Shown piece by piece: positions 6,880 through 62,650 of a DNA stretch of 64,000 nt. Positions within the stretch are counted from its first letter, which is position 1. The number at the start of each line of letters is the position of its first letter. The position numbers and the translations under genes were made by a program. The stretch lies in the NCBI GenBank assembly GCA_964234715.1, contig OZ174277.1, one strand, 5' to 3'. The DNA comes from Podarcis melisellensis (taxonomy: Eukaryota). Under the pieces are notes generated by a model that saw only the letters and a program-made list of their open reading frames with translations, ran no database searches and had not been told where the DNA came from.

Positions 6880-7867
6880 GTAGAGTCCCTGTACTGATCC
6901 TCTTATCCTGCAGCTGATGTCGGAAGCTGCCAGTGTCAAAGGTGACCATGCAGAGTAAATTTTGCTATGTGTTTTTCCTAGTGTAGGATCAGCGGGGTCA
7001 GCAGTAGTCACCGTAGTTCCTTCCAAGATGATGTTGGGCTGCAACTTCTGTCAGTCCCAGCAAGCATGATCAATTGTCAGGGGTGATGAGAGTTGTCATT
7101 CAGTAACATCTGAAGTGCACCATTTTGGCTATCCCTGAGTTAAGAGCAATATCTTGGTGTGGGTGTTCTCCCCCTCTCCATACATCTTGATCTTGCATAC
7201 TTACTGCTTCTCCAGCCAGCAGTCCAGAACATTATCTCCATTACCCCCTTACCCTGTGGACCAAATTTGACAGATGGGTGGGGCTGCCAATGTGTCAGTC
7301 AGCTTGTGACATGAGGCGATACGGCAGAGGGCTCTGCTGGACTTTTAAGTGTTGAAGATCAACTGATCACCCGGACTTCAGAAGTACTCTGCACAAGGCT
7401 TTTAAAATGCCACTGGTCAGCTTATTAGCACTTCAGAAGCTCCTTTTTGTCCATCCATCTTTTTACCTTTCCACACCTGATGTCATATATAGTGACAGGT
7501 GATTGACAGGTAAGTGTGACTTGGCCAAAATGGCCTGGCAGGCTAAATGGGGTCTAAGGCCTAGAGGTTATCCACCTCTGATTGTATAATATGACCTATC
7601 TGCTGCCAGATCTAACCTTTCCACCTTATGACTGATATTAAGTAAGAAAGATCATGCAGGATTGCATGTCTTTAGTCAGTCTCTGGATAGTTTATGCTAA
7701 GGAGCTCTTAGAAGAACTGGATTTATTTGGTCATACACCCATAAAACTGTTAACAGTTAAAGGTTTTTACAACTTCTTTCTTCAGCAAGAACTGCCTGCT
7801 GTAGTTTCAGCAGAGACATTCCATAGGGGGTGAAAAAGCTCTATTAATAGTTTTCTACTAGCAATAT

Positions 7868-9525: not shown

Positions 9526-9848
9526 CAGGGGTCAGCAAACTTTTTCAGCAGGGGGCCAGTCCACTGTCCCTCAGACCTTGTGGGGGGCCAGATTATATTT
9601 TGAAGGGGGGGAAATGAACGAATTCCTATGCCCCACAAATAACCCAGAGATGCATTTTAAATAAAAGCACACATTCTACTCATGTAAAAACACCAGGCAA
9701 GCCCCACAAATAACCCAGAGATTCATTTTAAATAAAAGCACACATTCTACTCATGTAAAAACATGCTGATCCCCAGACCATCCACGGGCCAGATTTAGAA
9801 GGTGATTGGGCAGGATGCGGCCCCCGGGCCTTAGTTTGCCTACCCATG
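9526..9848. mobile_element. hAT non-autonomous element
   Basis: TIRs CAGGGGTCAGCAAACT / AGTTTGCCTACCCATG; 8-bp TSD CTCTAACA/CCCTAACA; internal ~63-bp tandem duplication (9630-9692, 9701-9763). Confidence 0.8.
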
Positions 9849-12227
9849 CCCTAACAGGAGTAGTAAGCATGTTCAATCCACTGAACCAGAGCTATTGAGT
9901 TGAACAGAAAGCATGGAGGAGGCCTGCTGATTTTTCTCTTTCTAAACGGTTTTGCTCCTGCAAAATGCAGCAATGATGCTAGCATTTTGTGTGTGAACTT
10001 TTTACTTTTAAAATAACAATGTGGATTGTTGCAGCATCTGTTTTGAGCAACATTAAGGGACAGAATGGCTTCCCTTAGGCTATCAGTACAGTATTACTGG
10101 CAAATCTCTTTTGAATTCTTAACGCCTTTTGAACTAGGACAGAGGGTTCTTGGTTAATGAGTGAGTGAACAAAAAGTATTTGTGGTAAAACCATATCTCT
10201 CCTGAGGCAACCATTTGTGAAACTATGTTCAGACATGCTTCTCTAGCTAGAATCTGGCTACGAATGGCACACTTCTAGTGGATATTCACAGTGGAACAAG
10301 TGTCTTTAAAATAAAGGCACACAACAGTTTTGTATGCTTGCAGAGACTATGTTCATACAGAAAATCCTTAAACATGGTGGTACCAGGCTATTTGTGCTAT
10401 GTCTTACCAGCAGTGGAAAAGCCAGTCTTTGAGATACTTCAAAACACAAAAGGTTCAAAACACTGTTAAATGGGTTTGACAGATAAGATGATTCCAAATG
10501 TAATAAATTCAGGGCACTCATTTGTTGTCTTGTTGATAAATAATTTCTAGCAACCTGCCCTTGGTTTTTGCTTCCATGATGGCTAAAATCCATTGTATTG
10601 AAACAGAACTTTTGCTTTCTTTTTCTGTAGTTGATGCTCTTAATTAATATGGTCAGGCAGGATGCCCTCCCTTCATGCTTCTAGTTTATTTAGGGGGGGG
10701 GGAATTATATACCGCTATTCATAAAAATATTAGCAGTTGACAGTCATACATAAAACTATGCAGTAAAAACCATATACAAATTTTAAAATCAGAAATAAGC
10801 TAGCTGTTATGGAAAGATGTATTCTTAATGGCCGGCTGGAATAGAGAAATTTTCAGCAGTATGTCATACAAGACCAGACTAAAAGAAAACTAGATTTCCT
10901 CCCCTTCCTGCAAAATCAGCCACTTTTGGTAGACAAATAACTTCATTCCAAGCTACATACTGCATGAATCTACCTTAAAAGCTACACTTGCTAGGCAAGT
11001 AGGATAGCGCAGCAAACGATGACTGCTGGACTCAGGACCTGCTTGCAGGTTTCCCATAGGTATCTGCTTAGCCACCCAGGATGCTGGGTAGATGACCCTT
11101 TCGTCTGATCTTGTGGGGATTCTCTTAATGTTCTTATGATGGAATGCCTGAGATGGAAAGCATGGGACCCAACACGCAAACACACACATTCACATTGCAA
11201 GTGAGCAAAGACATTCTGTGAGAATGCCACACAAATAAGGTGAGTAGCATTTAGGCCTGGTTTACAATCTGAGGAGTCTATGCAAAGCACATGGGATGCA
11301 AATAAATTTGCTCCAAGATTGCATGGATAATCTTAAAGTTCATCTGTTTGTCTACTGCCTTTGTTGGTAGCCTGAAGGTCAGAATCTTTAGTATCTCCTA
11401 CATTAACAGAGATTTGAGAATTTGTGGTTTAAACAAGCGGCATACCCTATAGGTATAGGCACCTTCTTTCTACAGGGCTTTCCAAGTACAGGATAATACC
11501 AGTTCATTCTCTGCAACTAATTTTATAAAAAACTCAAACTATTTGGTTCGAACCTAGTGCTTTATATTGCATTGCCTCCCTATTTGTTGTCTCTCCTTTA
11601 GCATCTTGTCTTAAAATGCATTATGATAGAAGCTGGCTCGCCTCAGACAGGATTTATGCAGTTCAGAGCAAGGAAAACATGAAACTCAAGAACATCACTG
11701 AGAATGGAGACTAAATCTGGTGACCGTTTGCCAGAGGAAAAAAGGAAGGATAAACAAGATCCAAGAGTGTAAAAACATTTAATAAACTTCTTAATCTCTT
11801 CCTTCTTAATCTGCAGATAGTTTGTGACAGAGGTACAGAACTCAATCCAGGGGTTATGGGTGGGGAGGAAGGGATGAATACTACTTGTAATATAAAAATA
11901 TTTTGGTTTACAATGGTCATTTTTCTTCATTTATAGGAACATCATCATGAGGCTTGGGAATACCTTGACCTGAAATGGGCTGAATCCTGATGACACTGAT
12001 CTAATGTAAGCATACTGAACCTGTTAATCCTCTGGAGATGTTGGAAGCTTTTTGCGTGAGAATTCCCTCCAAAGTATTGCCACACTTTCTGCCTGCAAAG
12101 AAAACACTGGATTTCTAAGAAACTAGTCTCTCCCTAATGCAGTGGATCTCTCCAGGGCCCCCACCTTACATCTGCTTATGAACTTCAGTGCTTGGTTTGC
12201 ATTTGATCCAGGAGAATTCCAAGTGAC

Positions 12228-12302
12228 AGGTAGTGTAAACATCCTACACTCTCAGCTGTGTGGAAAAGAAGAAAGCTGGGAGAAGGCTGTTTACTCTCTC
12301 TG
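12228..12302 (+). ncRNA. MIR30C2: pre-microRNA mir-30c-2
   Basis: miR-30c-5p TGTAAACATCCTACACTCTCAGC (12234-12256) and miR-30c-2-3p CTGGGAGAAGGCTGTTTACTCT (12276-12297) form a hairpin. Apical UGUG and downstream CNNC (CAGC, 12313-12316) motifs are present. It lies convergent to OGFRL1 as in mammals. Confidence 0.96.
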
Positions 12303-14025
12303 CCTTGGAAAGCAGCTGAAGGAGGAAAACATGGAGATCTTGCAAGTTCCCCCCCCCCCCCTAAGCCCTGTTTGGCGCTTGCTGTGTAGCAGTTTGCATG
12401 TGTATGTTTTGACGCCAAGTTGAACAAACCCTGGTGAGAATTTTAAAAATAGAAGTTAATTAGTGTACAATGCTTGTTTTTAAAATTACTGTGGGGTGTA
12501 ATTAGGCACTAAGGAGGAAAAGCTACCCAGAACGTACCTCCATAACATGGGAAGAGCCATCTAGTTCAGCATTGTGTTCTCACAACAGCCCACAAGCAGG
12601 TTGTGAGGGCCTTAGCACTCTTTCCCACTAGCGATCCATGGTCATATCTCTCTTAATAAACATAGTATCATGATAAGTAATGTGTAATGGATAAATGCCA
12701 GCTTTCATACTGAAATGGAATAAACTAGAATTAACTTAAACATCACTCAAGAGATTTAATGAGAGGGGGGCAGTTCTTAATAGTCCAGGCAGCTTGGTTT
12801 TGTTTGGATACCATTGCCAGTGCATCTGACAAGAAAAAATTGGGGCCTAATGTTTTGGAATCGTCAATAAACTTGAAGTTTGAAAAAATGGGATGGAGTA
12901 TGTATACTTAATTGGAAAACGTTTTGCAAAACTAAGGATGCCATTACTTTTATATTGACAATGCACTTACTTTTTAAGCAGAAGTGCTGTGTAGTACAAT
13001 TGCATTTTTATCACATGTGATCCTTGTTGATGTGCAGGAGATTTTGATCCTTCTCTTCACACTTAAGACTGTGGTGTGGAACAGCAACATTTCTGATAGA
13101 ATAGCATTTTATAGTTGGAAGGAAACGTCAATGAATTGGAAGCTTTGATAATTGGAGCATCTACTATCGCAGATTCAAGGCGCGCATGCACACACACTAC
13201 AAAGGAAAAAATAGCTCTGGCATCTCTGGAACATGCCTTAATGGAAGAAGCTATATGTTAGTTACAACCTTCCTATTAACAATTTACAGATGTAGTACTG
13301 GGCTGGAGCTGGGCTTGTGAATCCAGGATTGGCTTTTGTACAGAGACAGGCAGTTCCCATATTTATTAGAGTAACAAGCTCCAAGAGTTTGAGACACTAG
13401 ACTTCTAAAGTGTGGGTCATCCTTCAGTCTAAAACTGAGGGCCAAACTAGACATTACTTTCAAACGTGCAGTGATTGCTCAGCAGCGCTGTGTTGGATTA
13501 AAAGCTAGTACTTTATATTTTTATTCAATTGCAGAAAGTTGGGAAATAAATTTTCATGGTGATCTGTTTTGGAGGGCAACGTTTTCATTTTTGTTTCTGC
13601 TCCAAATTCCCCTTACCAATGACTTTTTCCCCTGTAGGGTTTTAAATGGTGTGTTTACCTTTTTTAAAAATGACTTTGGAACAAGAGAATGGGCTGCTTT
13701 GCATGGGGTTTGGATCAGGTGAGGCAGGAAAGCATGAAATTCCCTGCTCCAGTGCATTGCTCTCCATCTCTCTTGCCTGCAACAACTGCTCTTTGGGGAG
13801 GGGGAGTGGTGTTGGGGTTACCAGGCTGCTGCTGGATTTGTATGCAGCAGGTAGTTTGCTCTTGGTTTGTTACAAGTTGAAGGTCTTCAGCCAGATTGAT
13901 TATGAAAGGTTTGCTCATACCCACTTGCATTCATGAAGGGATGGGATCAAGACCTTATGAAACTTTATTTTTATTTCGTAAAATCAATGCACCACTTGCT
14001 TGTAAAGAAAACAACCCATCAAAGC

Positions 14026-14066: not shown

Positions 14067-14145
14067 GACATGCAGAAGCAATCACCTCAACCTATCTTTT
14101 TGACTTTAGAGCGCATGATTCATTTATCTATCCTATGGCTAACCC

Positions 14146-14602
14146 CGTATAGTTAAAGCTATGGTTTTCCCAGTAGTGATGTACGGAAGTGAGAGCTGGA
14201 CCATAAAGAAGGCTGATCGCCGAAGAATTGATGCTTTTGAATTATGGTCTGGAGGAGACTCTTGAGAGTCCCATGGACTGCAAGAAGAACAAACCTATCC
14301 ATTCTTAAGGAAATCAGCCCTGAGTGCTCACTGGAAGGACAGATCCTGAAGCTGAGGCTCCAATACTTTGGCCACCTCACAAGAAGAGAAGATTCCCTGG
14401 AAAAGACCCTGATGTTGGGAAAGATGGAGGGCACAAGGAGAAGGGGACGACAGAGGACGAGATGGTTGGACAGTGTTCTCAAAGCTACAAACATGAGCCT
14501 GACCAAACTGCGGGAGGCAGTGGAAGACAGGAGTGCCTGGCGTGCTCTGGTCCATGGGGTCACGAAGAGTCGGACACGACTAAACGACTAAACAGCAACA
14601 AC
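14146..14602 (+). mobile_element. BovB (RTE) LINE, 5'-truncated
   Basis: WRRLLRVPWTARR...LQYFGH...SLEKTLMLGK...GVTKSRTRLND is the BovB C-terminus; (CAA)n tail; TSD ATGGCTAACCC at 14135-14145 and 14603-14613. Confidence 0.92.
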
Positions 14603-24200: not shown

Positions 24201-24345
24201 CAGCTTGGCAAATATTAATTTTTAATTTTTGCTATTTATGTTTTACTTTTGGGAGGGAGCTAGCTATGGGTTGTATCTCAAGTTCTCAAAGTTGACCAAC
24301 ATGAGTCCATTAATTTTAATGGGTCTTTTCTGAGTCGGATGTTTG

Positions 24346-24829
24346 TGTTATTCTAAAGCACCAAGGCTGCAGCAAGCAAAGGCAGCACAGTCTGCTGCTT
24401 GTGGCTGGAAAGCCAAACAGGATGTTTGTGACTGTTGCCATGGGAACAAAGGGGCAGTCCATTCTGTACTGAGCACCGGATGTTAGCTCAGTGGGTTTGT
24501 CATATGACCTGTACAGGATGTACATGGGTGAGTTTCTCTCTGTATGTTGAAGAGAGCAGACATGTTTACTGGATGACTGCTGAAAGACACAAATAAAAGG
24601 AGATGTAGATACGTTACTGTCTGTGTCTGATTCCCCTCCCTGGGGATATGCAGGGAGGAGGAGAGAAGGAGAAGCAGTTGGTGTGTTTTCCTCACAGCCT
24701 GAGGAAAATCGCCGGAACGGACCTCGTGTTGTTTATCCTGCCGGGAGTCGCCGGAGGGAGGTCTAAGGAATTCAGCCGGTGCCTGATCAGATAGGCACAT
24801 ACCGATGACCGGGTAGCAGAATTCCAACA
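24346..24829 (+). repeat. 5' LTR
   Basis: TGTTATTC...TTCCAACA, direct repeat of 27856-28339; AATAAA at 24592-24597. Confidence 0.95.
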
Positions 24830-24830
24830 T

Positions 24831-24848
24831 TGGTAGCAGAGGATGGTT
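24831..24848 (+). other. Primer-binding site, tRNA-iMet
   Basis: TGGTAGCAGAGGATGGTT is the reverse complement of the 3' 18 nt of vertebrate initiator tRNA-Met (...AACCATCCTCTGCTACCA), 1 nt after the LTR. Confidence 0.92.
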
Positions 24849-25311
24849 CCTGTTTTCATCGCCCTCTGCATCAAGAAGTGGCTTCCATGGATGCCTGACC
24901 TGAGAAAGCTGATTCTCTGCAGCCAGAAGCTGACCAGAGCAAGCTGGAGGCAAAAGCCACGGAGCCCAGGTATGTGATTTTCGGGCTTAGAAGAGTGGAT
25001 GCAGACTGAGTTATTTCTCTGCTTCGAGGGAGCAGCGTATGGGAAACAGCTCCAGTTAAAAGTGAAACCGCATACCAAACATTCCTGTGGCTTTCTTCTC
25101 CAAGGGATTGGAATGTACTGTTGCTAAGCGACGCCTTTCAGTGAAGGCTAATCCTCAGAGAGGAGAAGTGAAAGCAACAATGGAATGTTTTGACTACAAA
25201 GGCTGAGGAGCTCCTGGAAATTTCCAACGCAGCCAGCGTTGAGAGCTGCCAGGTGCACAGAGTGTAAACAAGCCAGCTATTGGATTTTAGAGGCTTGTGT
25301 TTTGAGAGTCA

Positions 25312-27996
25312 ATGCAAGGACTCACAATGGATGCCAAGAAGGGGGGAGCTTTGCCTTCTCCGCCCCTTTTGACCAGTGACAATTATGCATCTTGGTCTAT
25401 TAAGATGAAGGCTCTGCTGCAGAATCAGAGACTGTTTGACGTGATAGAGAACCCCATTCCTGCAGCGCCAACGCGTGCTTGGGAGTCACAGGATGTGAAG
25501 GCCAGAACTGCCATAATTCTGTGCGTGTCAGATTCGCAGTTGATCCACATACAAGGCTTAGAGCACGCGAGAGATGTTTGGAACACGCTGAGAAGGACAC
25601 ATCAGAGAGATGCAGGTTCTTCAGCGTTGCTGTATTTTGAGAAGCTGACCAACCTGAGGCTTGCGCCTGATGGAGATGTTCAAGCGCACCTGACGGAAAT
25701 GAAATTTCTGCGTCAACAGATGGTGGAACGCAATTTCCGTTTGCAGGAGGAAGTGTTTTGCTTCATGGTGATCAACAGCCTGAATCGGACTTACAAAACA
25801 GTTGCCAGTCAGCTGGGGTCTCTCCCAGCGAATGATCTCACGTCGGAGAGGGTCTTTGCCGTCGTGTTGAATGAACATGACAGGCTTGCAGCCCTGGACG
25901 TGAAGGACAGAGGGAGGGAAGAACGGAGTTCTAACGCCCCCACTGCTCAAGCTACTGGAGGAGATGCTGTAGCTATGAACGTTGTCCGATGTTACAATTG
26001 TGACCAGACTGGGCATATTCAGCGGAACTGTACGAAGCCACGTCGGAAGAAAGGAGCCAAGGGAAGCTCCACAAAGTCTGACACGTCAGACAAAGGTCAC
26101 ACCAAGCCAAAGGCAAAGACTGCAAAGGCTTTGATGTCGCTAAAAGCCACACCAGAAGCGGGGAATTTCTTTGTTTTGGATACTGGAGCCACAGTTCACA
26201 TGACGGGACACAGAGGACTGTTTTCTACGTTTAAGAAGCAAAGCTTCGCTGTACAACAAGCCAACGGTCAAAAGCTGGAAGCGACCGGAATTGGGACTGT
26301 ATATCTTAAAAGTCTGAACTTGACTATAAACAATGTTTATTTGGTTCCAGAGTTGAAGTTTAATCTGCTCAGCGCTTCGCAGATTGCCAAGAAGGGACTG
26401 AAACTGTCCTATGATGATGAGAAATGCGAGATCTACAAAGATGGAGAGCTGTATCTTTCTGCCAAAGAGAAAGATGGACTGTATTTGTTGACTTTTGATC
26501 AAAGTGATTACATGAAATGTAATTCTTGTGATTCTAACATGATCTCTTTTGCAGGTGTAGCTGAGAAGGACGCCAAGCAGGTGACCTCGAGGGGCAAAAG
26601 AGCATTTCAGCGGGTGTATGCTGATGTGATTGGTCCTTTAGAACCATCTAGAGGCAATGCAAAGTATTACCTAATATGTGTTGATTCTTTTACAGGTTTT
26701 ATCTGGATTTATCTTTTGGAGAGACCGAAAGAAGCCTTAGAAAGGTTTAAGGAGTTTTGTGACAAGGTTAAAAATATGCATGATGCTGACATAGATTGTC
26801 TTTGCACAGATGAGAAGCCAATTTTTCTTTTACAGGAGTTCCAGAGGTTCCTGAAGAAGAAAGGGATAAAACACAAACTTGCAGCTTCCGAAGAAGCTTG
26901 GAATAGATGTGTTTGTGTTAGGGTGAACAAAGAATTGCATAAGGGAATGCATGCGCAATTACTTAGTTCACATCTGCCACATGAGTACTGGGCTGAATCG
27001 CTAATGTCATATTGTTATACCTGGTTGAGAAAGTTTTCAAAAGAGTTGGGAAGTTCTCCTTTTGAGAAACTGTTCCACAGAAAACCTTCTGTTGCCCATT
27101 TCAAGGTTTTTGGGTCTCATGTGAGAACAGAAGCTCCAGGTGGAGTAAAGAATGCCAGAGGCATTTTTGTGGGTTATGAAAAGGGTCTCTACAGAGTAAT
27201 TTTGTCTGAATCTGGAAAGGTGATTCTCACAAAATTTCTAGAGAGTGCTCCTGAACAAGAGAGAGTGATTGTTCACACATTTCCCACAGGTGATGATGAT
27301 TCTGATGATGATGATGATGATGTTGATTTTATTGAGTTCAGTAGTACTGATGATGACAGCGATAGCTCAGAAAGCTCAGTTGTCACAGTCATTGAGAGGA
27401 AATCTCACACAATGACTAGACCCTCAGAAGAGGAGGATGAACCACTGATTAAGCTTAGTACTGGTTCTCCAGAGAGTTCAAAGGCTGAACCAGAAAGTAG
27501 AGAAGAGCAGCACCTCTTACGTAGGTCTGAGAGAGCAACGAAGGGTGTACCACCCAAGAGGTATTCACAAGAGTTTGCTTACTTAGCTGTTGCTGTTGTA
27601 AACGACCAAGGTCAGATTGAAGCTGTGTCTGAGTCAGAGACAAAGGCACAACAGAGAATTGTTAACCAAGGTAATGCAGAAGCACTCATTCCTTGGAAGT
27701 CACACAACCAGAGAGGTACATTGGTAAAACCAGTGGCGGGTAGTTCCAAGGGTGGAACTGAAACAACAGGGGAATGTTATAAGTATAACAACTGTTTGTT
27801 TTCTTCTCTGGATGACGCTTTGCTCGCAGCACGCATTGATACTTTAGGGGGAGGATGTTATTCTAAAGCACCAAGGCTGCAGCAAGCAAAGGCAGCACAG
27901 TCTGCTGCTTGTGGCTGGAAAGCCAAACAGGATGTTTGTGACTGTTGCCATGGGAACAAAGGGGCAGTCCATTCTGTACTGAGCACCGGATGTTAG
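25312..27996 (+). CDS. Copia-type Gag-protease-(pseudo)integrase polyprotein, 894 aa
   Basis: Gag N-terminus (NYASWSIKMKALL), UBN2-like core, CCHC knuckle CYNCDQTGHIQRNC (25990-26031), aspartic protease LDTGAT (26179), rve-like ADVIGP...VDSFT...TDE, and GIFVGYEKGLY. No YxDD RT or RNase H. The second ATG (25327, ACAATGG) has the better Kozak context. Confidence 0.88.
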   Translation: MQGLTMDAKKGGALPSPPLLTSDNYASWSIKMKALLQNQRLFDVIENPIPAAPTRAWESQDVKARTAIILCVSDSQLIHIQGLEHARDVWNTLRRTHQRDAGSSALLYFEKLTNLRLAPDGDVQAHLTEMKFLRQQMVERNFRLQEEVFCFMVINSLNRTYKTVASQLGSLPANDLTSERVFAVVLNEHDRLAALDVKDRGREERSSNAPTAQATGGDAVAMNVVRCYNCDQTGHIQRNCTKPRRKKGAKGSSTKSDTSDKGHTKPKAKTAKALMSLKATPEAGNFFVLDTGATVHMTGHRGLFSTFKKQSFAVQQANGQKLEATGIGTVYLKSLNLTINNVYLVPELKFNLLSASQIAKKGLKLSYDDEKCEIYKDGELYLSAKEKDGLYLLTFDQSDYMKCNSCDSNMISFAGVAEKDAKQVTSRGKRAFQRVYADVIGPLEPSRGNAKYYLICVDSFTGFIWIYLLERPKEALERFKEFCDKVKNMHDADIDCLCTDEKPIFLLQEFQRFLKKKGIKHKLAASEEAWNRCVCVRVNKELHKGMHAQLLSSHLPHEYWAESLMSYCYTWLRKFSKELGSSPFEKLFHRKPSVAHFKVFGSHVRTEAPGGVKNARGIFVGYEKGLYRVILSESGKVILTKFLESAPEQERVIVHTFPTGDDDSDDDDDDVDFIEFSSTDDDSDSSESSVVTVIERKSHTMTRPSEEEDEPLIKLSTGSPESSKAEPESREEQHLLRRSERATKGVPPKRYSQEFAYLAVAVVNDQGQIEAVSESETKAQQRIVNQGNAEALIPWKSHNQRGTLVKPVAGSSKGGTETTGECYKYNNCLFSSLDDALLAARIDTLGGGCYSKAPRLQQAKAAQSAACGWKAKQDVCDCCHGNKGAVHSVLSTGC
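27846..27855 (+). other. Polypurine tract
   Basis: AGGGGGAGGA directly abutting the 3' LTR; Copia-type PPT. Confidence 0.88.
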
Positions 27997-28339
27997 CTCA
28001 GTGGGTTTGTCATATGACCTGTACAGGATGTACATGGGTGAGTTTCTCTCTGTATGTTGAAGAGAGCAGACATGTTTACTGGATGACTGCTGAAAGACAC
28101 AAATAAAAGGAGATGTAGATACGTTACTGTCTGTGTCTGATTCCCCTCCCTGGGGATATGCAGGGAGGAGGAGAGAAGGAGAAGCAGTTGGTGTGTTTTC
28201 CTCACAGCCTGAGGAAAATCGCCGGAACGGACCTCGTGTTGTTTATCCTGCCGGGAGTCGCCGGAGGGAGGTCTAAGGAATTCAGCCGGTGCCTGATCAG
28301 ATAGGCACATACCGATGACCGGGTAGCAGAATTCCAACA
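27856..28339 (+). repeat. 3' LTR
   Basis: Identical to the 5' LTR, preceded by the PPT and followed by the TSD. Confidence 0.95.
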
Positions 28340-31300
28340 GTTTGTTGGGGGGGGCGAGCCCCTGCCCCAATCTTGAGGGATCAGAGGATGCTGAGTGCAA
28401 GAGAGAAGGAGCTGCCATTGAAGCTGCACCGTGCTGGGCTCCGCACTCAGCTTCCTCCCAAACAATGCGCATGTGCTGTGGCCTGACGCCACTGCCAGCC
28501 CCCTGCCTGCAAACATGCCTAGACCGCCTTGGTCTGCGCTGTCACCCACCCACAAGTGTGCTCAGGCCACCTTGGTGGGCTGCATCATTGTGAGGAAGCC
28601 TCTTTCAACTGGTTGGTTGTTGGTTTTTTGGTCACTGGTCAAGTGTTTTGAGAAATAAAAGGCTGCAAAAGACTTCCAGTGATAGGCTGGAATCACTCAG
28701 AGGTCTACTCTTACACAACATGGACCCTTAGGCTTGTGAGGGGAAGGTGAAGCAGCAAGGCATGAGGAATTATGGGTAGCGGTAGCAACTGGGAAGGCAG
28801 CTACAGAAGGGCTCTCATAATTCGTGCAGACTTCAGTGCTAAAGTAGGACGGAATTAGTACTGATTTAGAGTAGGGCAGTGTAAATGTGGTGACTGATTG
28901 GAGTTATTGTTTCTTTCAAGGTGGCCTGTAAGCATACACAGTTACTGCCATAATGAAATTATCCTAATGAAGGCATTGGATCACTTTTACTACTGGATTG
29001 TCTATTTTATACGTACAGCTGGGATGTATTACCCAGAGTGGAGAGGAGACATTTGTTAAATTGATTCGGCAGACTCATTTTATGTATTCTTAGTATAAGA
29101 GCTTCAGCTCTGATTAATAGGCCACGTGCAGTTGCCATCTTAAGTTTCAATACCAAATAATTTGTGACGCTGCTTATTCAATGAGGGAAGTTTTCAAAAT
29201 GCCACCTGCTATGTTCCTTTAAGCCTTTCAATGGCAAGCTATTCTGAAGCACTCTAAAATGAAAATGTATTTACTTTCCCCATGCAAATCTGAGAATGAG
29301 GCACTTATTCCCCCCTCCCCCATTTTGTTCACTCAGCTTCTGTTTGCATGTGTTGCAGATATAAGTTTGTGCTGGCTCTTATCAAATTAGGCTGAGTTCT
29401 GGACTAACCCATCAGATTGGTCCTCTTTTCCAACAACCTTTATATTTTAACATGGCAAATAATAATAATAATAATAAATAATATAGCATATTATTTTAAA
29501 TACACACACAACTGTTTGTGGGATATTTAATCCAGATTTTGTCTGGAGTCTGTACCCCAGTATAACTATTACAAGATTGCTGAGCTTTCTACAGAACCTT
29601 TTCATATGGATTATTCATATGAAAGAAGGCATAGATGTTTGCAGCCATCTCTTCTGGCCCTTTATTTTTCAGGTGGCATCTTGTCTTCAAGTCTGATGTT
29701 TCTGCTGTTAAAATACCAGGCTAGTGCACAGTAAGACCACTCATTCATGATTGAGCACCATGTGGGGTGGGGAGGAGTCACTGTTGAGGAAGCATGCATG
29801 AGAAGATTGTGATGTCAGGGTATCTTCGCATAAAAGTGATAAATTTTCTGTTGCTTCCTCCAGTAGCTGTAAATCTGCATTGGCCAGAATGCTCATTTGC
29901 ATTACAAATACCCACTCCTCAGCATTTCTCTTTAGCAGAGGTTAACAATAATAGTATCTCAAAAGTGACTTGGAGTCTTGCGTGTGGAAACAGGTAACTG
30001 GTGCCATCCTAGAATGCCTGCAGCACTATCATTTTTTGCATTTTTGTGAAGGATTTTACTTATTGTATGTAAGCTACTCTGGGAGCCAATCTTACCTGAA
30101 ATACATGGTACAAGTGTGATCTTAAGTACATATGTATCTAATAAAGCAAAGTTAAGGGAGTGTTGAATTAAAACAAAGTTTATGGAGGTGGTCCTGTTCT
30201 TCAGAAAATAACTACTTTTCAGAGAATCAAAACTGCTAAATTGTTTCAATTCAATGCATGTGCTCCTATAACTGCACACAAATGAAATAATGTTTGCTTA
30301 GTAGGGGAAGAGACTTAGCTCCAGGCAACCTTGTGTACACGGAGAAATCAAGTCCCTCACTTGTTACATTTTGATAGATTTAATCATTCATCTTTAGAAA
30401 TAGCGATAGAAGCATGCGGAGACTTGACAAAGTTTGCTGGTGGCTCAAATCAATGCCAATGTCTGTGGCAAAATAGATTCAACGTCCACTTGTTAGAGTA
30501 TCTGTTTTTGTAGAAACTGTGCAGAAGTGAAGGGAACTGGGAGGGGTGGTATGCTGTGCTTCGAAACCTGCGCTGAGAGTGAAGGAAGGCCTGTGAAGAA
30601 AAAAATCAAAGTGTCTTGGAGATGCTAATCCCAAGTACACCAAAAGCAAGTTTTGCTTAGGTTTTTTTTTTAAAAAATAAAATAAAAATGCACCTGTAGT
30701 CACTTTACATATGTTGCGTGCCATCCCAATCTCCAAGCGGTGGAAGATTCCAAGTGTTCCAGACATGCCTACCCAGGATCCATGTTTCCTTTTGGAAATG
30801 AGGCACAGCAGAGACTGTGGTATCTTTAGGATATATGGTTTCTTTACAGACATGCATATAACCTGGCCTGCAGTGGAGGGCATCACAGCAACAACACTCC
30901 AGTAGGGTCTTGCTTCTCCCATAGGTACAGCTCTGGATTCAAACCTGCATCAGCCATGGCTCTGACCCTCTCCTCAGCTTGCCGCCTTTAATGGACTGCC
31001 ACCTTTTCCCTCGCAGCCACATTCCATCCAACTCTAAACTCTGAATACTGACTTTTGTTCTTCTAATTAACTCTGAGCAGAGCGAGAGGTTCCACCCACT
31101 TGCTGTCTGGCAAAGATGTTGCCTTCTCAAGGGGTCATTACCTTCCCTTTCTTAATGGCTCGTCTCCCAGGCAATTCAATAGAATCTGTGCTGAATCCAG
31201 GAATTAGAAGGGAGATCCAGGCATTCAGCCTACCACCCACAAAACCCCTCATAACACTTAATAATAACTTGAGAACAAGAAACAGTTACACACATGAACA

Positions 31301-37976: not shown

Positions 37977-40900
37977 GTCTACTGTCTGTCTACTGTATAT
38001 ATAAGCACAGAAGAAGCCTTATATAAAGGCTGGGCAGTTTGAGACCTATACTATTGCTTATAGCTCTCTCAACTACTTGAAAAGGTTGGCTGTGAGAAAC
38101 GGGGCAGATCTCAGGCTAAGCATCCTCATGGAGTACCAGTAGTTTGTAGGATGGTGATGTTGCAGCCATTAACAAGAATGTGGTGCCCACATCTCACTGC
38201 AGATAAGGTGCTCTGCTGACCCTGTGTGGAAAGCTCCCTTACACTAAATCAGACATTGCTCTATCTAGCTCAGTCATGCCTATATTGACTGGCTATGGCT
38301 CTCCAAGGTTTCACATAGGGTACATTCCCATCCCTGGTCTGGATATGCTGGGGAACTGAACCCAGGACCTTGTGCGTGCAAAGCAGTTGCTCTGCCACTG
38401 AGCCACAGGATTTATATATCGGGTGTAAGGACAAGTAAAGCTGCAGTTCTGAGCAAACTTAACATGGAAGCAAGCTCCTTAGGTCTAAATGGGACTTCCT
38501 TCTACGAAAACATTTTTAATATCAGATTTTCTGTGTCTTTTGTAGCTTCTGTACTTCATCTGGTTGGTCCCTCTTGCGTTCTAGGATGTTATTAATGGCA
38601 GTAAAATAGTAGATATTTACGAGGTGAGGCAGAGGCTACGAGGAAAACATTTCTTCTAAGTGTATCTACTCAATGGATAAATTGCATGTTTCATGTTAGC
38701 ATCAGCTGCAAAGTTAGAATGTTATAAACAGCTAAACAGCCTTTTTGAAGAGGTATCGTCAGGCTTCAGGGCCAGCTTCCTTCTCACTTTGACCGTAGAT
38801 AAGCAGTGCAAGATAAAGTAGTCTCTTACCAGCAACAGAAATGTTTAATGAAGGCAGCAAAAGAACAAAAGACCATTCTCGCAGTGCAGGTGCCCCCAGT
38901 TAAGTTTCTCCCACTTCCCTCTAGTCACTTCCATCTTCGTCTCCTATTTACCCCATCTCTCAACCAATTAGCCTTCTGTGAAGTTACCTTATCCAATCTC
39001 CTAGCCCTGGGACTAAGAGGCTGTATACCTTCCAGTGAGGGAGAATCGGTTAACTTTCTCTCCTCCCGTTCTGCCTCTTCTTGTTGTTCACCTCCCAATT
39101 CTGCCCAACTCCTGTCCTCTGAACTGTGTCCCTCAGCAAACCATTGTTCCAGGTCAATACTACTCTCTTGCTCCTGTGGAGCCCCAGGATCAGGGGGAGA
39201 GGGGGACGCCCACCACTCCTCACCAGAGTAGTACTCCCCAGCCTGATCTCTGACAGATGTTGGGTTACTGACGGTTTCTAAAACCGGCAGATATTAAGAT
39301 ATTTTGGCATAAAGGTTTTTTCGTTATGCAGAAAAAGAAAAAAGGAGACCTTTACCTGTCACCCTTTATTATCTCGGTACTGAGCAAGCTCTCTCTTTAA
39401 CTTACAGAACTGTCACAAGCTGAAGGACTTTGACACCAGTGGATAGGTTAGGTGCTGAACCAAGCACCCAGGCATATATGTCTTTCATTGCCTACTAAGA
39501 GGAAATCATTGATTCAAGCTTAGATCACCCACATTCTTCAACTGAGTTTAATTTCACACCATTCAGCAGAGAGCAAGGCATTAGAAGCTGGAAGCAGAGG
39601 CTACAGCTGAACACCAGTAGATGGCTATGGCCTTCATGTCTCACCTATGATTTTCCCCAGAGGCATCTTGTTGTCAACAGAATGCTAGATTAGGGCAACA
39701 TCCTTTGCACACTTACTAGGAAGTAAACACAGTTGAAGGCAATGGAATAAACATGCTTGTGCTACACCTGATATTTGGTCTTACCCAGAAAGTCCCTACT
39801 ATTATTATTTACATAGGAAGTAAAGAGCTTTCTACTTCTGTACCTCCATGCTGGGAGTTTCTCAACATCACAAGTTTTGTCAGTCATACAGGAATTATTA
39901 TTATTATTATTATTACTACTCATGCAGGGGGGAAAGTTGGGAGAAACTCAGACCATTCAGTCACTTAAAAGGTCTGCTTTAAAAGAAGAGGGGAGATGAA
40001 ATGTTCACCTAACAGTAGCATGCAGCAAAATAGGGGACTTCTGAGATTTGCACTCTAGCCAAGGTGAGGGGAATGTTAATTGTTGCAGGTGAAAAGGATT
40101 AAAAACAAACAAACCTTTATGCAGCCAGAATTTACCAGAATTCACTTACTTTGCTAATACAGTTGTAAATAGCTGTGGCATGTCAAAAAGAATGCAGTTT
40201 TAAAACACTTGACACTTCTGAGTAAAAAGCACATGCATATATCTATTGTAGCAGGCAGTCCCGTCCCCCCGCCCCTCACCCATTCTTCACACTTTGGCAT
40301 TCCAGCTGGTCAAGGGAATATTCAGTATAAGAGCTGAAGAGAGGACTACTGGCTAATTTTAGCACGTTGAGTAGGAAATTCCAGTGGTTTTACTATAATG
40401 TTCTCCCAAGAGGAACAAGGAAAACCCCATTTGCTTCTCTGATCAGCTGCAAAAAGTACAGCCAACATCCCAATTGTAGATTCCAAGTTATGTCTTTTTA
40501 TTACATTTCTTCAAACTCTTCTCCTCTTATTAAAGAATAAGCTCAATCGTTTATCCCAGCTGTATTTATTCTGCCAGTTTAGTCCCATTTCCTCAAAAGC
40601 AGCTTTGGAAATGAACTGCAGAAGTCCAGTACTACACATCTGCACTGCTTGAACATCTACTGCATTGCTGTAAACATAGTTAATGCAAAACAAGCTTTAT
40701 TAGAAACCTTGGTGCACACTAGAGTTGCCACTTGAAAAGTTTTTCATATTTTACTTCATAAACCATTGCTTTGTAATAATTCATTTATGTCATTTGGCAG
40801 AAGACTTCCATGCAATCATAGAATCATATCTTTTACAATACCTTTCAAATCCAGAAACTGGTTACAACTTCCACCACGTACATATGGTAAATGGTTCTAA

Positions 40901-50158: not shown

Positions 50159-50915
50159 CTATGCTCGAGTCTCCTCTTTGTTCGATCCTCCTGGGTTTTT
50201 ATCCTTAACTACACTGTCTTGCAGATCTGTTGATATATTAGTTGAATCGCTTTTACAGTCACGGCAATCTTTTTCTACAAGTTCTGCATTTCTGCAGTCT
50301 TGATTAAGGTTTTCATCATTTTTGCCTTTATGTTTTTTAAGATGGCAAACGTTCTCCTTCTGGTTCGAAGGATTAGCAGTTTCTTCCAGTATGGAGTTCT
50401 GACAATCAGCATTGCTATTCTTTTCACCAATGCTTTGCTTAACAACCTCAGGGCTGGCGTGTTTCCTGCTCCGGTCACAATCGTCATCCTTTTTAGCATG
50501 TTCTGCCCTTTTTTCATTGGTTGCTTTGCCGCTTGAGTTACAAACCACGGGCACATTCTTGCATTCTCTCCCACTTTTATGTTTAGAAACGTAACCGCTG
50601 CGGAGGGAAACTGGCGATGCCAGCTTTTTACTCGGCTTGCTTCCTTCCAACTTCTGCTTCCTCGGCGGCCCCCATATGAAGTGGTCAGAGGGTGTGTAGT
50701 GCTGCTGGGCAAACCGCAGGAGTTTCCTCCTCTCTCTCCGGTCTCTAATAGTATATACAAAATATTCCAAAGCGCTTTGCTTAATGTTGGAGATGGTGTC
50801 TTCCACAAGAGCTTCGTGAAGAATGAATTTTACAAGAGGAGGTTTGAAACTCTCGTACCCAAGTTCGCCAAGACTCTTCAGAATACGGGTGATCCTCAAG
50901 TAGTTATGTTGGGAC
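50159..50915 (-). CDS. OGFRL1: OGFRL1 exon 7 (coding part, TAG stop)
   Basis: CACAG| SQHNYLRITRILKSLGELGYESFKPPLVKFILHEAL...FIWGPP then a charged tail. The seven exons sum to 1611 nt, an open frame of 536 aa. Confidence 0.94.
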
Positions 50916-57921: not shown

Positions 57922-59279
57922 TTATTATTTATACCCCGGCCATCTGGCTGGGCCTCCCCAGCCACTCTGGGCGGCTTCCATAAAAACCAAAAATACAGTA
58001 AAATCACACGTTAAAAACTTCCCTGAACAGGGCTGCCTTAAGATGTCTTCTGAATGTCAGGTAGTTGTTTATTGCTTTGACATCTGCTGGAAGGGCGTTC
58101 CACAGGGTGGGTGCCACTACCGAGAAGGCCCTCTGCCTGGTTCCCTGTAGCTTTGCTTCTCGCAATGAGGGAACCGCCAGAAGGCCCTCGGCGCTGGACC
58201 TCAGCGTCCGGGCAGAATGATGGGGGTGGAGACGCTCCTTCAGGTATACTGGACCGAGGCCGTTTAGGGCTTTAAAGGTCAGCACCAACACTTTGAATTG
58301 TGCTCGGAAACGTACTGGGAGCCAATGTAGGTCTTTCAAGACCGGTGTTATATGGTCTCGGCGGCCGCTCCCAGTCACCAGTCTAGCTGCCGCATTCTGG
58401 ATTAGTTGTAGTTTCCGGGTCACCTTCAAAGGTAGCCCCACGTAGAGTGCATTGCAGTAGCCCAAGTGGGAGATAACCAGAGCATGCACCACTCTGGGGA
58501 GACAGTCCGCAGGCAGATAGGGTCTCAGCCTACGTACCAGATGGAGCTGGTAAACAGCTGCCCTGGACACAGATTTGACCTGTGCCTCCATGGACAGCTG
58601 TGACTTCAAAATGACTCCCGGGCTGCGCACCTGGTCCTTCAGGGGTACAGTTACCCCATTCAGGACCAGGGAATCCTCCACACCTGCCCGCCTCCTGTCC
58701 CCCAGAAACAGTACTTCTGTCTTGTCAGGATTCAACCTCAATCTGTTAGCCGCCATCCATCCTCCAACCGCCTCCAGACACTCACACAGGACCTTCACTG
58801 CCCTCACTGGTTCTGATTTAAAAGAGAGGTAGAGCTGGGTATCATCTGCATACTGAGGAACACCCAGCCCAAACCTCCTGATGATCTCTCCCAGTGGCTG
58901 CATGTAAATGTTGAAAAGCATGGGGGAGAGGACAGAACCCGGAGGCACCCCACATGTGAGAGCCCAGGGGTCTGAACACTCATCCCCCACCACCACTTTC
59001 TGAACACGGCCCAGGAGGAAGGAGCGGAACCACTGTAGGACAGTGCCCCCAGCTCCCAGCCCCTCAAGACGGTCCAGAAGGATGTTATGGTCGATGGTAT
59101 CAAACGCCGCTGAGAGATCCAGCAGAACTAGGAAACAGCTCTCACCTTTGTCCCTAGCCCGCCGGAGATCATCAACCAGTGCGACCAAGGCAGTTTCAGT
59201 CCCATGATGAGGCCTGAATCCCGACTGGAAGGGATCCAAATGGTCCGCTTCTTCCAGGCGTGCCTGGAGTTGTTCAGTA
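57870..59279 (-). mobile_element. L2/CR1-clade LINE, 5'-truncated, in OGFRL1 intron 1
   Basis: 411-aa open RT frame (QSGFRPHHGTETAL, LLDLSAAFDTIDH, GVPPGSVLSP, YADDTQLY) followed by an (ATT)n tail. Confidence 0.92.
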
Positions 59280-60207: not shown

Positions 60208-61299
60208 TTTGTACCATTGATTTCAGTAGGATTTACTTTTGAGTAAATGTGCATAGGACTGTGATGTAAGATCCCTGTTGGAATGCAGTCAGAAAATAAA
60301 ACACAGATCCATACCTTTTGTACTGTGCAAATATACATATGGGAATACTGAATGGCAAAACTGCCTAAAAAGTGCCCCACTTATCACATGAGCCAGGCTA
60401 ATATGTGGAGGTACAGTTTCAATAATAATAATTCTCTACAGAGATGAAAGCATGAGGTGGAAACATAAGGACAGTGGTCTTCAGTTTAATGTTTGTTAAG
60501 AGACAGAAAATAATTCCATGGAGGTAATGATTGAAAATAGAGTCCACGTTGCATTCAGGGTAAGAGTATTTTTTTTAAAAAGTAAAAAGCTGATAATATG
60601 ATCTAGCCTAGAGTTGAATAAGGAGGAGGCAAGTAACTCTCTTTTCTTTGAATAATCTCCTTATTTCTTGGGTTTATGAGTTCTTTTGGTCCTGCACAGT
60701 GATGTGTTGTCTAATACGTGCAATCATAGCTGTAGTTACACTCAGCCAGAATGTCAAATAAGCCCTGTTCTGAAACTGCATTTTGTCACCACATGTGCTA
60801 CTGTAATTTCTATCCCCTGAACAGGCAGGCATGTGATGGGGGGATGATTATACCAAGGAAACAGAGAAGATTAGAACTACTTTGACCTTCTGCATTTTAA
60901 AGCCACCAGAATCTTTTTTCTAAAAGAGAAGATATAAAGCTCTGCTGAACAGCTTGCCAGAGGGAAAATGAATAAATCCCCCACCCCACCCCACCGTTCC
61001 TCCTTGCTACGCATGTCACAGGAAGGAAAACAAAAATCAGGCTGGATCAGCAAGCTGGTAACAAAATACAGCAAACCTGCCAGGCCAGAGTGCTTCGCTT
61101 CCTTGGTCTTCTTTCCTTTGATTGCCACACGCCTCAAATCCATATTTAGCTTCTTTTTTAACCCTACTAAGAATATGATGATGATGATAACAACAACAAC
61201 AAGGATGATGCAGCCACAGCTTGGCTCCTGAGTCACACTGCATGGGGGGGGGGAGGAAAAAAGGGGAAATGGAGAAAGCTGAAAGTGGAAATGTATATT

Positions 61300-62650
61300 T
61301 ATCTCTGTCTCTCTCTCACGCACGCGCGCGCACACGCACCCCAAGCGTTTGCAACCATGGTGTCCAAAAGTCCCCTGCTGCTGCATTCCGAGACTCTGGC
61401 GCACACCTGCCCCTGAACAGAGGGAGGGGAGGCACACAATCTTGGAGAGGCACCAGCACTGGCGGGGGGGGGGGCAGAGGCAATGGCGCTGAGGGGGGAG
61501 GGCTCCAGACACCGCCCCCCCCCATAGCCCCCTGGAGAAGTTTGCAGCGTCCCGAGTTACCTGCTCGGTGCTGGCGGCCTCCGCTTCGTCGTGCCTCCCT
61601 CCCTCTTGATCCTCGCCTTCCTCTTCCTCCTCCTCCTCTTCCTCGTCGTCCTCGTCTTCCTCGAGCTCCTCTTCTTCAGGCTCCTCAGCAACCCCTTCTC
61701 TGGGCTCGGCGTCTTCCGGCCGGCAGCTTGCCGCAGGGAGCGGTTCCCCCTGCTGCTGCTGCTGCTGTTCGTCCTCAGCTGGGTCGCCGCCGCCGCCGCC
61801 TCCTTCTTCTCCGCCCCCCAGCCCCTCGAGCGGCGTCCCTTCTTCCCCTCCGGAGTCCTGGAGCTCGGGCTCGGAGTCCGTCTCCCAGGTAGAGTCGCAG
61901 TCCTCCACCGTGGTGGGCTCCTTGAAGCTGACCCCGCTCAGCAAACTGCCCATTGGGAGAGGCAACGCAGGAGCCTCTCTCTCCCGCCCGGGGAGGACGG
62001 GGGAGGGAGCGCGCGCCCAGGGGAAAGAGGGGAAGGTCGCTCGGTCCGTCCGTAGGTAGGTAGGTAGGTTCCGCGAGCAGGCTAAGAATGCCGCTGCCGC
62101 CGCCGCCACCACCTCTGCTGCTCCTCCTGCTGCTCCGGCTGGGGCATGGTTGGCAGCGCCGGGAGGCCGCAGGCAACGCGAAGGAGGCTGGCGAAAAAGA
62201 CGACGACGACGAGGAAGACGGAGGCAGGCGCAAGCGGCTGAAGCGGCAGCAGGCGATGCTCTGCTCCTCCTCAGCCAGTCTCTCTCTCACCCACCCACCC
62301 CCAACCCACAGACACGCGCCGTGGGAAGGAGGAGCCGAGCGTTTGGGATTTCCACAGGAAATAGTTCAGCCCGCCCAGCGCCCCCTGAACGGCGGCGGCA
62401 GTAGCAGAGCGCAGCTGCCGCGCAAAAGAGGAACCTGGAGCGGACGGAGCGCTTCTCCGTGGCGGGGAAGGGGCGCCTTACGCAACCAGAACTTTCTATA
62501 GAGACGGGCAGGCGGGCGCGCGCTTAGTTTTATCCGGGAGCATTCCAAGGCGCGAGGGAGACGGTGCCCCGGGACCCCGGAGTCCCCTTGCGGACGGTGG
62601 TGGCGTTGTTACCTCCGCTCTAGATGCAGGTGACTTGCGGGCAGCAATGG
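61300..62650. promoter_or_regulatory. CpG island / OGFRL1 promoter and 5' UTR
   Basis: Abrupt GC- and CpG-rich stretch over exon 1 and upstream, with GC boxes (GGCGGG/GGGCG). Boundaries approximate. Confidence 0.8.
61561..61953 (-). CDS. OGFRL1: Opioid growth factor receptor-like 1, coding exon 1
   Basis: ATG at 61953 gives MGSLLSGVSFKEPTTVEDCDSTWETDSE, recognisable as the OGFRL1 N-terminus. Ends at the donor CAG|GTAACT; 393 nt, phase 0. Confidence 0.93.

Follow-up and report, generated by a model that had tools for sequence, protein, structure and literature searches.

A 64,000-nucleotide stretch of contig OZ174277.1 from Podarcis melisellensis (GenBank assembly GCA_964234715.1), referred to here as the window, contains a retrotransposon with two long terminal repeats (LTRs) and a single uninterrupted open reading frame (ORF) for Gag, an aspartic protease (PR), and an integrase (IN)-like region. 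A reverse transcriptase (RT) is missing from the ORF. Comparison with related elements makes it probable that the insertion is young and that the element, a semi-autonomous Ty1/Copia retrotransposon, represents a lacertid lineage (Podarcis, Zootoca) which has long been without RT and most of its RNase H (RH).

Structure of the element and the missing polymerase

The element has the ends of a Ty1/Copia retrotransposon: direct LTRs with TG...CA termini and a 5-bp target-site duplication (TSD), a primer-binding site (PBS) for the initiator tRNA-Met (tRNA-Met(i)) at the 5' LTR, and a polypurine tract (PPT) at the 3' LTR (Table 1). The PBS (TGGTAGCAGAGGATGGTT) starts one base past the 5' LTR and is an exact match to the tRNA-Met(i) primer site printed in a study that built this site into HIV-1 (PMC1797187). 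An AATAAA lies inside the 5' LTR at positions 24592-24597, and G-rich tracts comparable to the PPT occupy the same place in the related elements L001, L002, L006, L007, and L128 (see the following sections). The internal region accounts for 848 codons of the ORF; the remaining 46 (codons 849-894) and the stop codon are supplied by the 3' LTR. The window is free of N and holds no second copy of the element, and an exact-protein look-up retrieved no identical protein on record, neither for the ORF nor for P0003, a related protein of Podarcis lilfordi.

This anatomy agrees to the base with an initial annotation of the same DNA, which had also described the element as having just transposed. The identity of the LTRs stands, but it does not date the event to the present, because zero differences give only an upper bound on age: with 0 differences in 484 bp and typical squamate rates of 1-2.4e-9 substitutions per site per year, the insertion would be no older than about 1-3 million years (Myr).

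A Pfam profile search of the ORF (cut-offs of 32.6 bits for rve and 27 bits for SH3_retrovirus) identified a Copia-type Gag, whose three matches all score above cut-off (83.8 bits for Retrotran_gag_2, 32.8 and 26.0 bits for the others), and a Copia-type protease. The active site of the protease (D290-T-G) is present, with D290 invariant across the alignments, and the enzyme is apparently active, judging from its sequence. In the integrase, both the HHCC zinc finger and the D,D,E triad are incomplete. The gap in the zinc finger faces the H..H segment of other Copias, including P0025 and P0180 (an RT-less and an autonomous relative, respectively), and gag_pre-integrs has no Pfam match in the ORF. 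The alignments of the catalytic core show that D438 and D500 are kept but that Val536 (26917-26919) occupies the position of the catalytic Glu. The same Val is found in P0001 of P. lilfordi and in P0024 of Zootoca vivipara, which additionally lacks the first Asp. The integrase of the element is therefore predicted to be catalytically dead; the substitution of Glu and the loss of both His residues bear out an earlier hint that it is inactive. The SH3-like domain that follows is 94% identical between the window and P0001.

The RT is absent at all levels of comparison. RVT_2 has no Pfam match at E<=10 in either the ORF or its tail, and the tail alone matches no Pfam family. A tblastn search of the whole 64-kb window with nine autonomous Copia polyproteins, which covers all frames, returned matches only to Gag-PR-IN of this element and none to RT or RH, in keeping with the original claim that no RT lies between integrase and PPT. 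The order of domains is that of Ty1/Copia, with integrase upstream of RT: an IN-like core and an SH3-like domain precede an IN/RT junction motif that is invariant in the window, P0001, P0024, P0025, and the autonomous P0180. In P0180, the RVT_2 domain (residues 861-1103) begins at the position aligned just past this motif and falls into the gap of the window protein.

Between the junction motif and the PPT, a tail of about 80 residues retains a trace of the connection and the N-terminal half of RNase H. Profile comparison with hhalign picked out the strand 'KSTSG.CY.YN.C.F', and the Smith-Waterman score of 63 against the RT-RH region of P0180 was reached by 0 of 500 shuffled sequences; the score of 40 against the copy from the lizard Elgaria was reached by 18 of 1000. 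The vestige is kept in the Zootoca element. No catalytic Asp is aligned in it, and the C-terminal half of the domain is absent. The element thus has neither an RT domain (RVT_2, YxDD) nor an RNase H with its catalytic residues. The alignments thus indicate that the RT was lost essentially in full and that an N-terminal RNase H vestige of about 50 residues survives; residues 767-800 are ambiguous and may represent either the start of RT or the RT-RH connection. The initial annotation, which denied any RNase H, was right about the complete domain but overlooked that the stretch holds the junction motif and this short vestige.

Two other assignments in the tail were discarded. Vestiges of RT motifs (KARLVAQG, DVKSAFLNG, YVDD) had been read from a MAFFT alignment with distant Copias; this reading was withdrawn because the profile comparison and the shuffled Smith-Waterman scores favor homology to the N-terminal RNase H strand. 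The last 20 residues before the PPT, considered as the 'AD.LTK' end of RNase H, gave no significant score (649 and 909 of 1000 shuffles matched or exceeded it).

Table 1. Features of the retrotransposon in the window; residues are those of the 894-codon ORF.
Feature	Position	Strand	Basis and remarks
Left TSD	24341..24345	.	GTTTG, 5 bp; direct reading; same pentamer after 3' LTR
5' LTR	24346..24829	+	484 bp, TGTTA...CCAACA; 100% identical to 27856-28339
PBS	24831..24848	+	18 nt; complement of the 3' end of initiator tRNA-Met
Untranslated leader	24849..25311	+	between PBS and first ATG of the long ORF
ORF (Gag-PR-IN-like-tail)	25312..27996	+	894 codons; uninterrupted reading frame
Gag, residues 20-242	25369..26037	+	DUF4219, Retrotran_gag_2, CCHC zinc knuckle; Pfam
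Aspartic protease (Pol_BBD), residues 287-362	26170..26397	+	Pfam, 69.6 bits
Integrase N-terminal zinc-binding domain, remnant	26509..26598	+	CxxC kept; HH half and ~45 residues gone
Integrase catalytic-core-like domain, residues 430-585	26599..27066	+	rve, 24.9 bits, below cut-off of 32.6
Integrase SH3-like C-terminal domain, residues 588-640	27073..27231	+	SH3_retrovirus, 24.5 bits, just under cut-off of 27
Acidic Asp/Ser-rich linker, residues 651-736	27262..27519	+	read from translation; least conserved part
IN/RT junction motif RRSER..KGVPPKRY..EFA, residues 737-766	27520..27609	+	RT expected directly after
Vestige of connection/RNase H N-terminal half, residues 778-830	27643..27801	+	firm part TTGECYKYNNCLF
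PPT	27847..27855	+	GGGGGAGGA; adjoins 3' LTR
3' LTR	27856..28339	+	484 bp; every base as in 5' LTR
Right TSD	28340..28344	.	GTTTG; direct reading

Relatives without reverse transcriptase and selection on the protein

The RT-less structure recurs in other lacertids. In protein searches, the nearest relatives of the ORF were proteins of wall lizards. The sequence of P0001 (P. lilfordi, CAI5771638; 79% identity) extends from the zinc knuckle over the junction motif and the same RT-less tail and enters its own LTR, in the same frame and with the stop at the same place as in the window. Further P. lilfordi loci of the P0001 subfamily (P0003/P0022 and P0023) are distributed over two chromosomes, so that the subfamily occupies at least two loci; fragments related to the window element are present on three P. 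lilfordi contigs. P0029 is a Gag with 64% identity, and P0002 (XP_028560296) is a gene model of Podarcis muralis that merges a copy with a vomeronasal receptor. An exhaustive representative search added P0024 (XP_060129920; 869 residues) from Zootoca vivipara, which shares 39-42% identity with the window protein over its whole length. No autonomous protein closer than 36% identity to the window was found in the protein searches.

The locus of P0024 (L001) is a 3.47-kb element within an intron of FAM168A. Its 290-bp LTRs differ by one mismatch and end in TGTTA...TTCCAACA, its 18-nt primer site is identical to that of the window, and it has a G-rich PPT; the intact ORF of 869 codons, which lacks an RT, again runs into the LTR, and its tail aligns collinearly with that of the window. 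Copies are located at several loci and in introns of different genes in three genomes, and LTRs, PBS, PPT, and TSD of the window element are intact, whereas a domesticated host gene would be expected at a single orthologous locus without LTRs or TSD.

Several peculiarities of the Zootoca locus and its annotation deserve mention. In the public records of P0024, P0002, and P0001, the transposon ORFs are named 'FAM168A isoform X1' or 'vomeronasal type-2 receptor 26-like', which are chimeric or mislabeled models. At positions 12855-12906 of L001, the 3' LTR is followed by a second, slightly different start of primer site and leader (GTGGTAGCAGAG...GGTTTCGATCCACGGACC) and then by an A-run, and no 5-bp TSD is evident. 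This points to a tandem or recombinant structure instead of a simple insertion. Past the 18-nt primer site, the leader (9675-9717) carries GGTTTCGATCCA after an 11-nt insert; this sequence presumably continues the complement of tRNA-Met(i) into the T arm, as if extra tRNA had been copied in. A direct repeat of 241 bp (7002-7242 and 14075-14315; 87% identity, 7-kb spacing) brackets the element and may represent an older LTR pair, with the Zootoca copy nested inside that older element.

A second RT-less family comprises P0025 and P0171-P0173 from the Logan contigs L002 and L003 (assemblies ERR14657514 and ERR14657248). Its members encode Gag-PR-IN in about 4 kb with intact HHCC and DDE motifs, and a C-terminal remnant of RNase H lies outside the ORF; contig L002 forms a circle of 3736 bp, the arrangement predicted when the internal region is joined to a single LTR. 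The nearest relative of P0025 is the autonomous P0180 (67% identity; 1338 residues), which has an RVT_2 domain (235 bits), an RNase H, and intact HHCC and DDE motifs.

Maximum-likelihood analysis of Gag-PR-IN (quick search; support by the SH-like approximate likelihood-ratio test, SH-aLRT) places the window protein inside Copia, in a clade with P0023 and the Zootoca protein (support 99) that is sister (support 96) to P0025 and P0180; P0174 of P. lilfordi and the other autonomous Copias fall outside. A single origin of all RT-less families was rejected on the ground that P0025 is sister to an autonomous element with which it shares 67% identity, and RT must therefore have been lost at least twice in the clade. 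The loss in P0025 was independent of, and more recent than, that in the lineage of the window. The lineages of the window and Zootoca, which have common integrase defects and a common tail, trace back to one shared loss and have since diverged to 39% identity.

The primer site is another variable trait in this clade. The RT-less L002 (about 85-105) and the P. lilfordi Copia L128 (7889-7904) carry GGTTATGGGCCCAG after the LTR in place of the 3'-end site. We take this sequence to match the anticodon-arm region of tRNA-Met(i), which would correspond to the atypical half-tRNA priming of Drosophila copia. Its presence in the P0025 family and in L128 implies that the type of primer site switches within the clade.

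Divergence between the ORFs of the window and Zootoca points to selection on the protein since the loss of RT. The proportions of nonsynonymous (pN) and synonymous (pS) differences, estimated by the method of Nei and Gojobori (NG86), are 0.39 and 0.74 for the whole ORF, 0.34 and 0.75 for the protease, 0.34 and 0.77 for the integrase core, and 0.34 and 0.66 for the junction plus tail; the fraction of differing sites is 0.44, 0.36, and 0.59 at the first, second, and third codon position. This comparison, which had been proposed as a check of the initial annotation, yielded pN < pS in every domain and shows purifying selection on every part of the protein during the RT-less period, the dead integrase and the vestigial tail among them. 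In their DNA, the alignable sequence is limited to a handful of coding segments, the junction and tail, and the LTR end with the primer site; the LTR bodies and the leader are no longer alignable.

Source of the missing enzymes and alternative explanations

Because the element cannot copy itself, yet the copies in the window and in Zootoca were inserted recently, RT, RNase H, and an active integrase must have been supplied in trans. In the scenario that best accommodates the observations, the LTR would drive transcription of a genomic RNA, which would be translated into a Gag-PR-IN polyprotein with a defective integrase and cut by the element's own protease. The RNA would be packaged in virus-like particles together with Gag-Pol from a co-expressed complete Copia. 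The RT/RNase H of this helper would copy the RNA, primed by tRNA-Met(i) on the conserved 18-nt site and by the PPT, and its integrase would recognize the conserved TGTT...CCAACA ends and integrate the cDNA, duplicating 5 bp of the target. The dead integrase may have been retained for a non-catalytic task, for instance in assembling particles or intasomes, in nuclear import, or in binding its own cDNA ends.

Three related Copias with RT illustrate what such a helper might look like. The locus of P0180 (L006; ends TGTTAG...CAACA) has the primer site TGGTAGCAGAGG after a 2-nt spacer and is the best match to the cis signals of the window among the RT-bearing Copias seen. L007, from Elgaria multicarinata, belongs to the P0180 clade and is nearly complete, with 99% identical LTRs, the TSD CAACC, and the ends TGTCAG...CCAACA; it shares the CCAACA 3' end with the window but begins with TGTC. 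L128, from P. lilfordi (OX395130.1), has an RVT_2 domain of 212 bits, 376-bp LTRs with 100% identity, the TSD AAGTG, and the ends TGTTG...GCCAACA. The window, L006, and L128 have in common a TGTT 5' end and a (C)CAACA 3' end, a likeness of 4-6 bases that leaves L006 and L128 at most candidate partners. In the annotation of L007 (10001-16163), the gene model P0217 joins the RT-RH of this Copia to a downstream long interspersed nuclear element (LINE; Exo_endo_phos and RVT_1) and is a chimera.

A number of points weigh against a helper-dependent lineage as described here. The sequences searched, which stop short of a whole-genome census, contained no helper from the same genome whose LTR ends, PBS, and promoter match those of the element. 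The only RT-bearing Copia seen in Podarcis, L128, belongs to a distant family (29% identity in Gag-PR), uses GGTTATGGGCCCAG, an internal part of tRNA-Met(i), unlike the 3'-end site of the window, and has a frame that is broken once between protease and integrase core (9600-9980); despite its identical LTRs and clean TSD, this copy would have been inserted in an already inactive state unless it uses a frameshift. Of the three RT-bearing Copias, L007 and L128 are the ones assigned to a host species, the lineage of the window itself is represented by the DNA of one copy only, and the saturation of dS between window and Zootoca means that the strength of selection is known only roughly and only its direction is firm.

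Further searches brought little. Among the 120 matches listed for the RT-RH of P0180, Elgaria is the sole squamate and no lacertid protein occurs, which says little because annotation pipelines mask transposons. In metagenome scans, a strict pattern of LTR end plus PBS had no match, and a relaxed pattern matched 120 loci, nearly all by chance and without a close Copia. Of the two-component system envisaged in the initial annotation, the RT-less half is documented in Podarcis and Zootoca, and the helper half is deduced from the recent insertion of copies that have no RT of their own.

An alternative reading, which is compatible with helper dependence, is that Gag, protease, and dead integrase are kept mainly to poison the particles or intasomes of complete Copias, which would make the element an interfering parasite or a restriction element favored by the host, comparable to Ty1 p22 or to Gag restriction of the Fv1 type, with mobility as a by-product. 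The conservation of a dead integrase (pN 0.34, pS 0.77) would suit a dominant-negative subunit, and the complete Copia of P. lilfordi (L128) is indeed broken once. However, the conserved PBS, PPT, and LTR ends and the repeated young insertions, which have a TSD or near-identical LTRs, show selection for transposition itself, and the copies occupy multiple loci and split into subfamilies as transposons do, unlike a host gene. Restriction as the principal function is therefore unlikely.

Mobilization by the polymerase of an endogenous retrovirus, a Gypsy or BEL element, or a LINE is less probable still. Although no cognate helper has been identified and a LINE RT fragment is present in the same window, the 5-bp TSD, the TG..CA ends, the tRNA-Met(i) PBS, and the PPT are the signature of integrase-mediated Copia insertion and not of LINE retroposition, and related Copias with RT have similar LTR ends.

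There is very little room for the possibility that an autonomous Copia copy lost its RT and RNase H privately, at or after insertion, and became a dead end. Deletion derivatives are common among LTR elements, and the P0025 family shows that RT loss can arise independently from a P0180-like autonomous element. Yet the tail, the integrase defects, and the read-through into the LTR are common to P0001 (79% identity) and to P0024/L001 of Zootoca (39%), so that the loss is not private to this copy, contrary to what would have refuted the initial annotation. A loss after insertion would not produce an 848-codon in-frame fusion common to different genera, and the closest autonomous protein found is no nearer than 36% identity. 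A mis-assembly or collapse of a full-length element can be dismissed almost entirely: identical LTRs can collapse, as in the circularized Logan and ENA contigs L002 and L006, but the window is without N, the ORF is continuous over the supposed junctions, and assembly error is ruled out because the same RT-less structure is present in independent assemblies, namely the chromosome-level assembly of Zootoca and a gene model of P. lilfordi.

Elsewhere in the window, a mir-30 precursor (12226-12303, plus strand; 70.4 bits in Rfam) lies 38 kb from an ORF with an OGFr_N domain on the opposite strand (50162-50899, minus strand; 117 bits). The two presumably correspond to the OGFRL1 / mir-30a-30c2 neighborhood of other vertebrates; the element would then lie in the intergenic or long noncoding RNA (lncRNA) stretch between them. 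A 411-codon ORF with a LINE-type RT (RVT_1, 97.6 bits) is located at 58007-59239 (minus strand). The GC-rich end of the window contains a second ORF of 411 codons (60880-62112, minus strand) that matches no Pfam family and is not a repeat of the first. A weak Rfam match to tRNA at 38346-38407 (minus strand; 31.2 bits at a cut-off of 29), which was not called by ARAGORN, is probably a fragment of a tRNA-derived short interspersed nuclear element (SINE).

Comparison with known systems

The closest parallels to a helper-dependent coding element are found in cereals. RLG_Quinta, which is mobilized by RLG_Cereba, keeps its Gag and has persisted for about 30 Myr, and Sabrina and WHAM have been called semi-autonomous (PMC11302176, PMC9744471). 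Pairs of autonomous and non-autonomous elements have been recognized by similar PBS, conserved LTR termini, concurrent activity in the same genome, and related promoters (PMC9744471). Like Quinta-type elements, the lizard element belongs to a non-autonomous lineage that derives from an autonomous one, has an intact Gag ORF without RT, and has persisted for millions of years; the plant elements share PBS and LTR termini with their presumed helper. By contrast, Quinta-type elements are Gypsy elements without protease and integrase, whereas the lizard element is a Copia of a vertebrate and keeps its protease and a dead integrase.

Other categories of non-autonomous LTR elements do not accommodate it either. 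Like the TR-GAG elements of plants, it is a terminal-repeat element with only a partial polyprotein, for which RT and IN are supplied in trans. TR-GAG elements, however, encode Gag alone, and the lizard element differs from them because protease, IN-like core, and SH3-like domain share the ORF of Gag and are followed by the RH vestige. Large retrotransposon derivatives (LARD) and terminal-repeat retrotransposons in miniature (TRIM) are defined by the absence of coding capacity, whereas the internal ORF of 848 codons is under purifying selection. Compared with the autonomous P0180/L006, L007, and L128, the element has the same Gag-PR-IN-SH3 order, TGT..CAACA ends, 5-bp TSD, and tRNA-Met(i) priming, but it lacks both the RVT_2 domain (212-235 bits in P0180, L007, and L128) and the RNase H.

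Internally deleted LTR elements that are highly active via full-length relatives are also present in vertebrates, such as IAP I-delta-1 and ETn/MusD of the mouse; from IAP I-delta-1, a fusion protein with a partial deletion continues to be produced. These are class II endogenous retroviruses (Gag-PR-RT-IN), young and close to their helpers, whereas the lizard lineage belongs to Copia and comprises members that have diverged down to 39% protein identity while RT-less. Among vertebrates, birds and mammals have lost their Copia elements, which survive in fish, amphibians, and non-avian reptiles (PMC4350176). No description of Copia in lacertids or of RT-less coding Copia in vertebrates was found in the literature searched, the coverage of which excludes Repbase reports. 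To our knowledge, Copia biology in vertebrates is almost unstudied.

It is about an even bet that lacertids host an ancient 'satellite' lineage of Copia that has long replicated without a polymerase of its own and keeps capsid, protease, and a dead integrase under purifying selection. Since Gag, protease, and dead integrase have remained under selection after the loss of RT, such a lineage would point to non-catalytic functions of integrase and to competition between helper and dependent element. If this is true, the dead integrase has an essential non-catalytic role, either for the replication of Copia or for competition with the helper, and vertebrate LTR retrotransposons form stable two-tier systems of parasite and hyperparasite as in cereal genomes. 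The lineage would represent a natural experiment on which parts of the Copia polyprotein must act in cis, and its young insertions are candidate polymorphic markers in Podarcis and Zootoca. Partly coding non-autonomous LTR elements are already known; what sets the lizard element apart from them is that it is a Copia in a vertebrate host that combines a retained protease and an inactive integrase with deep divergence.

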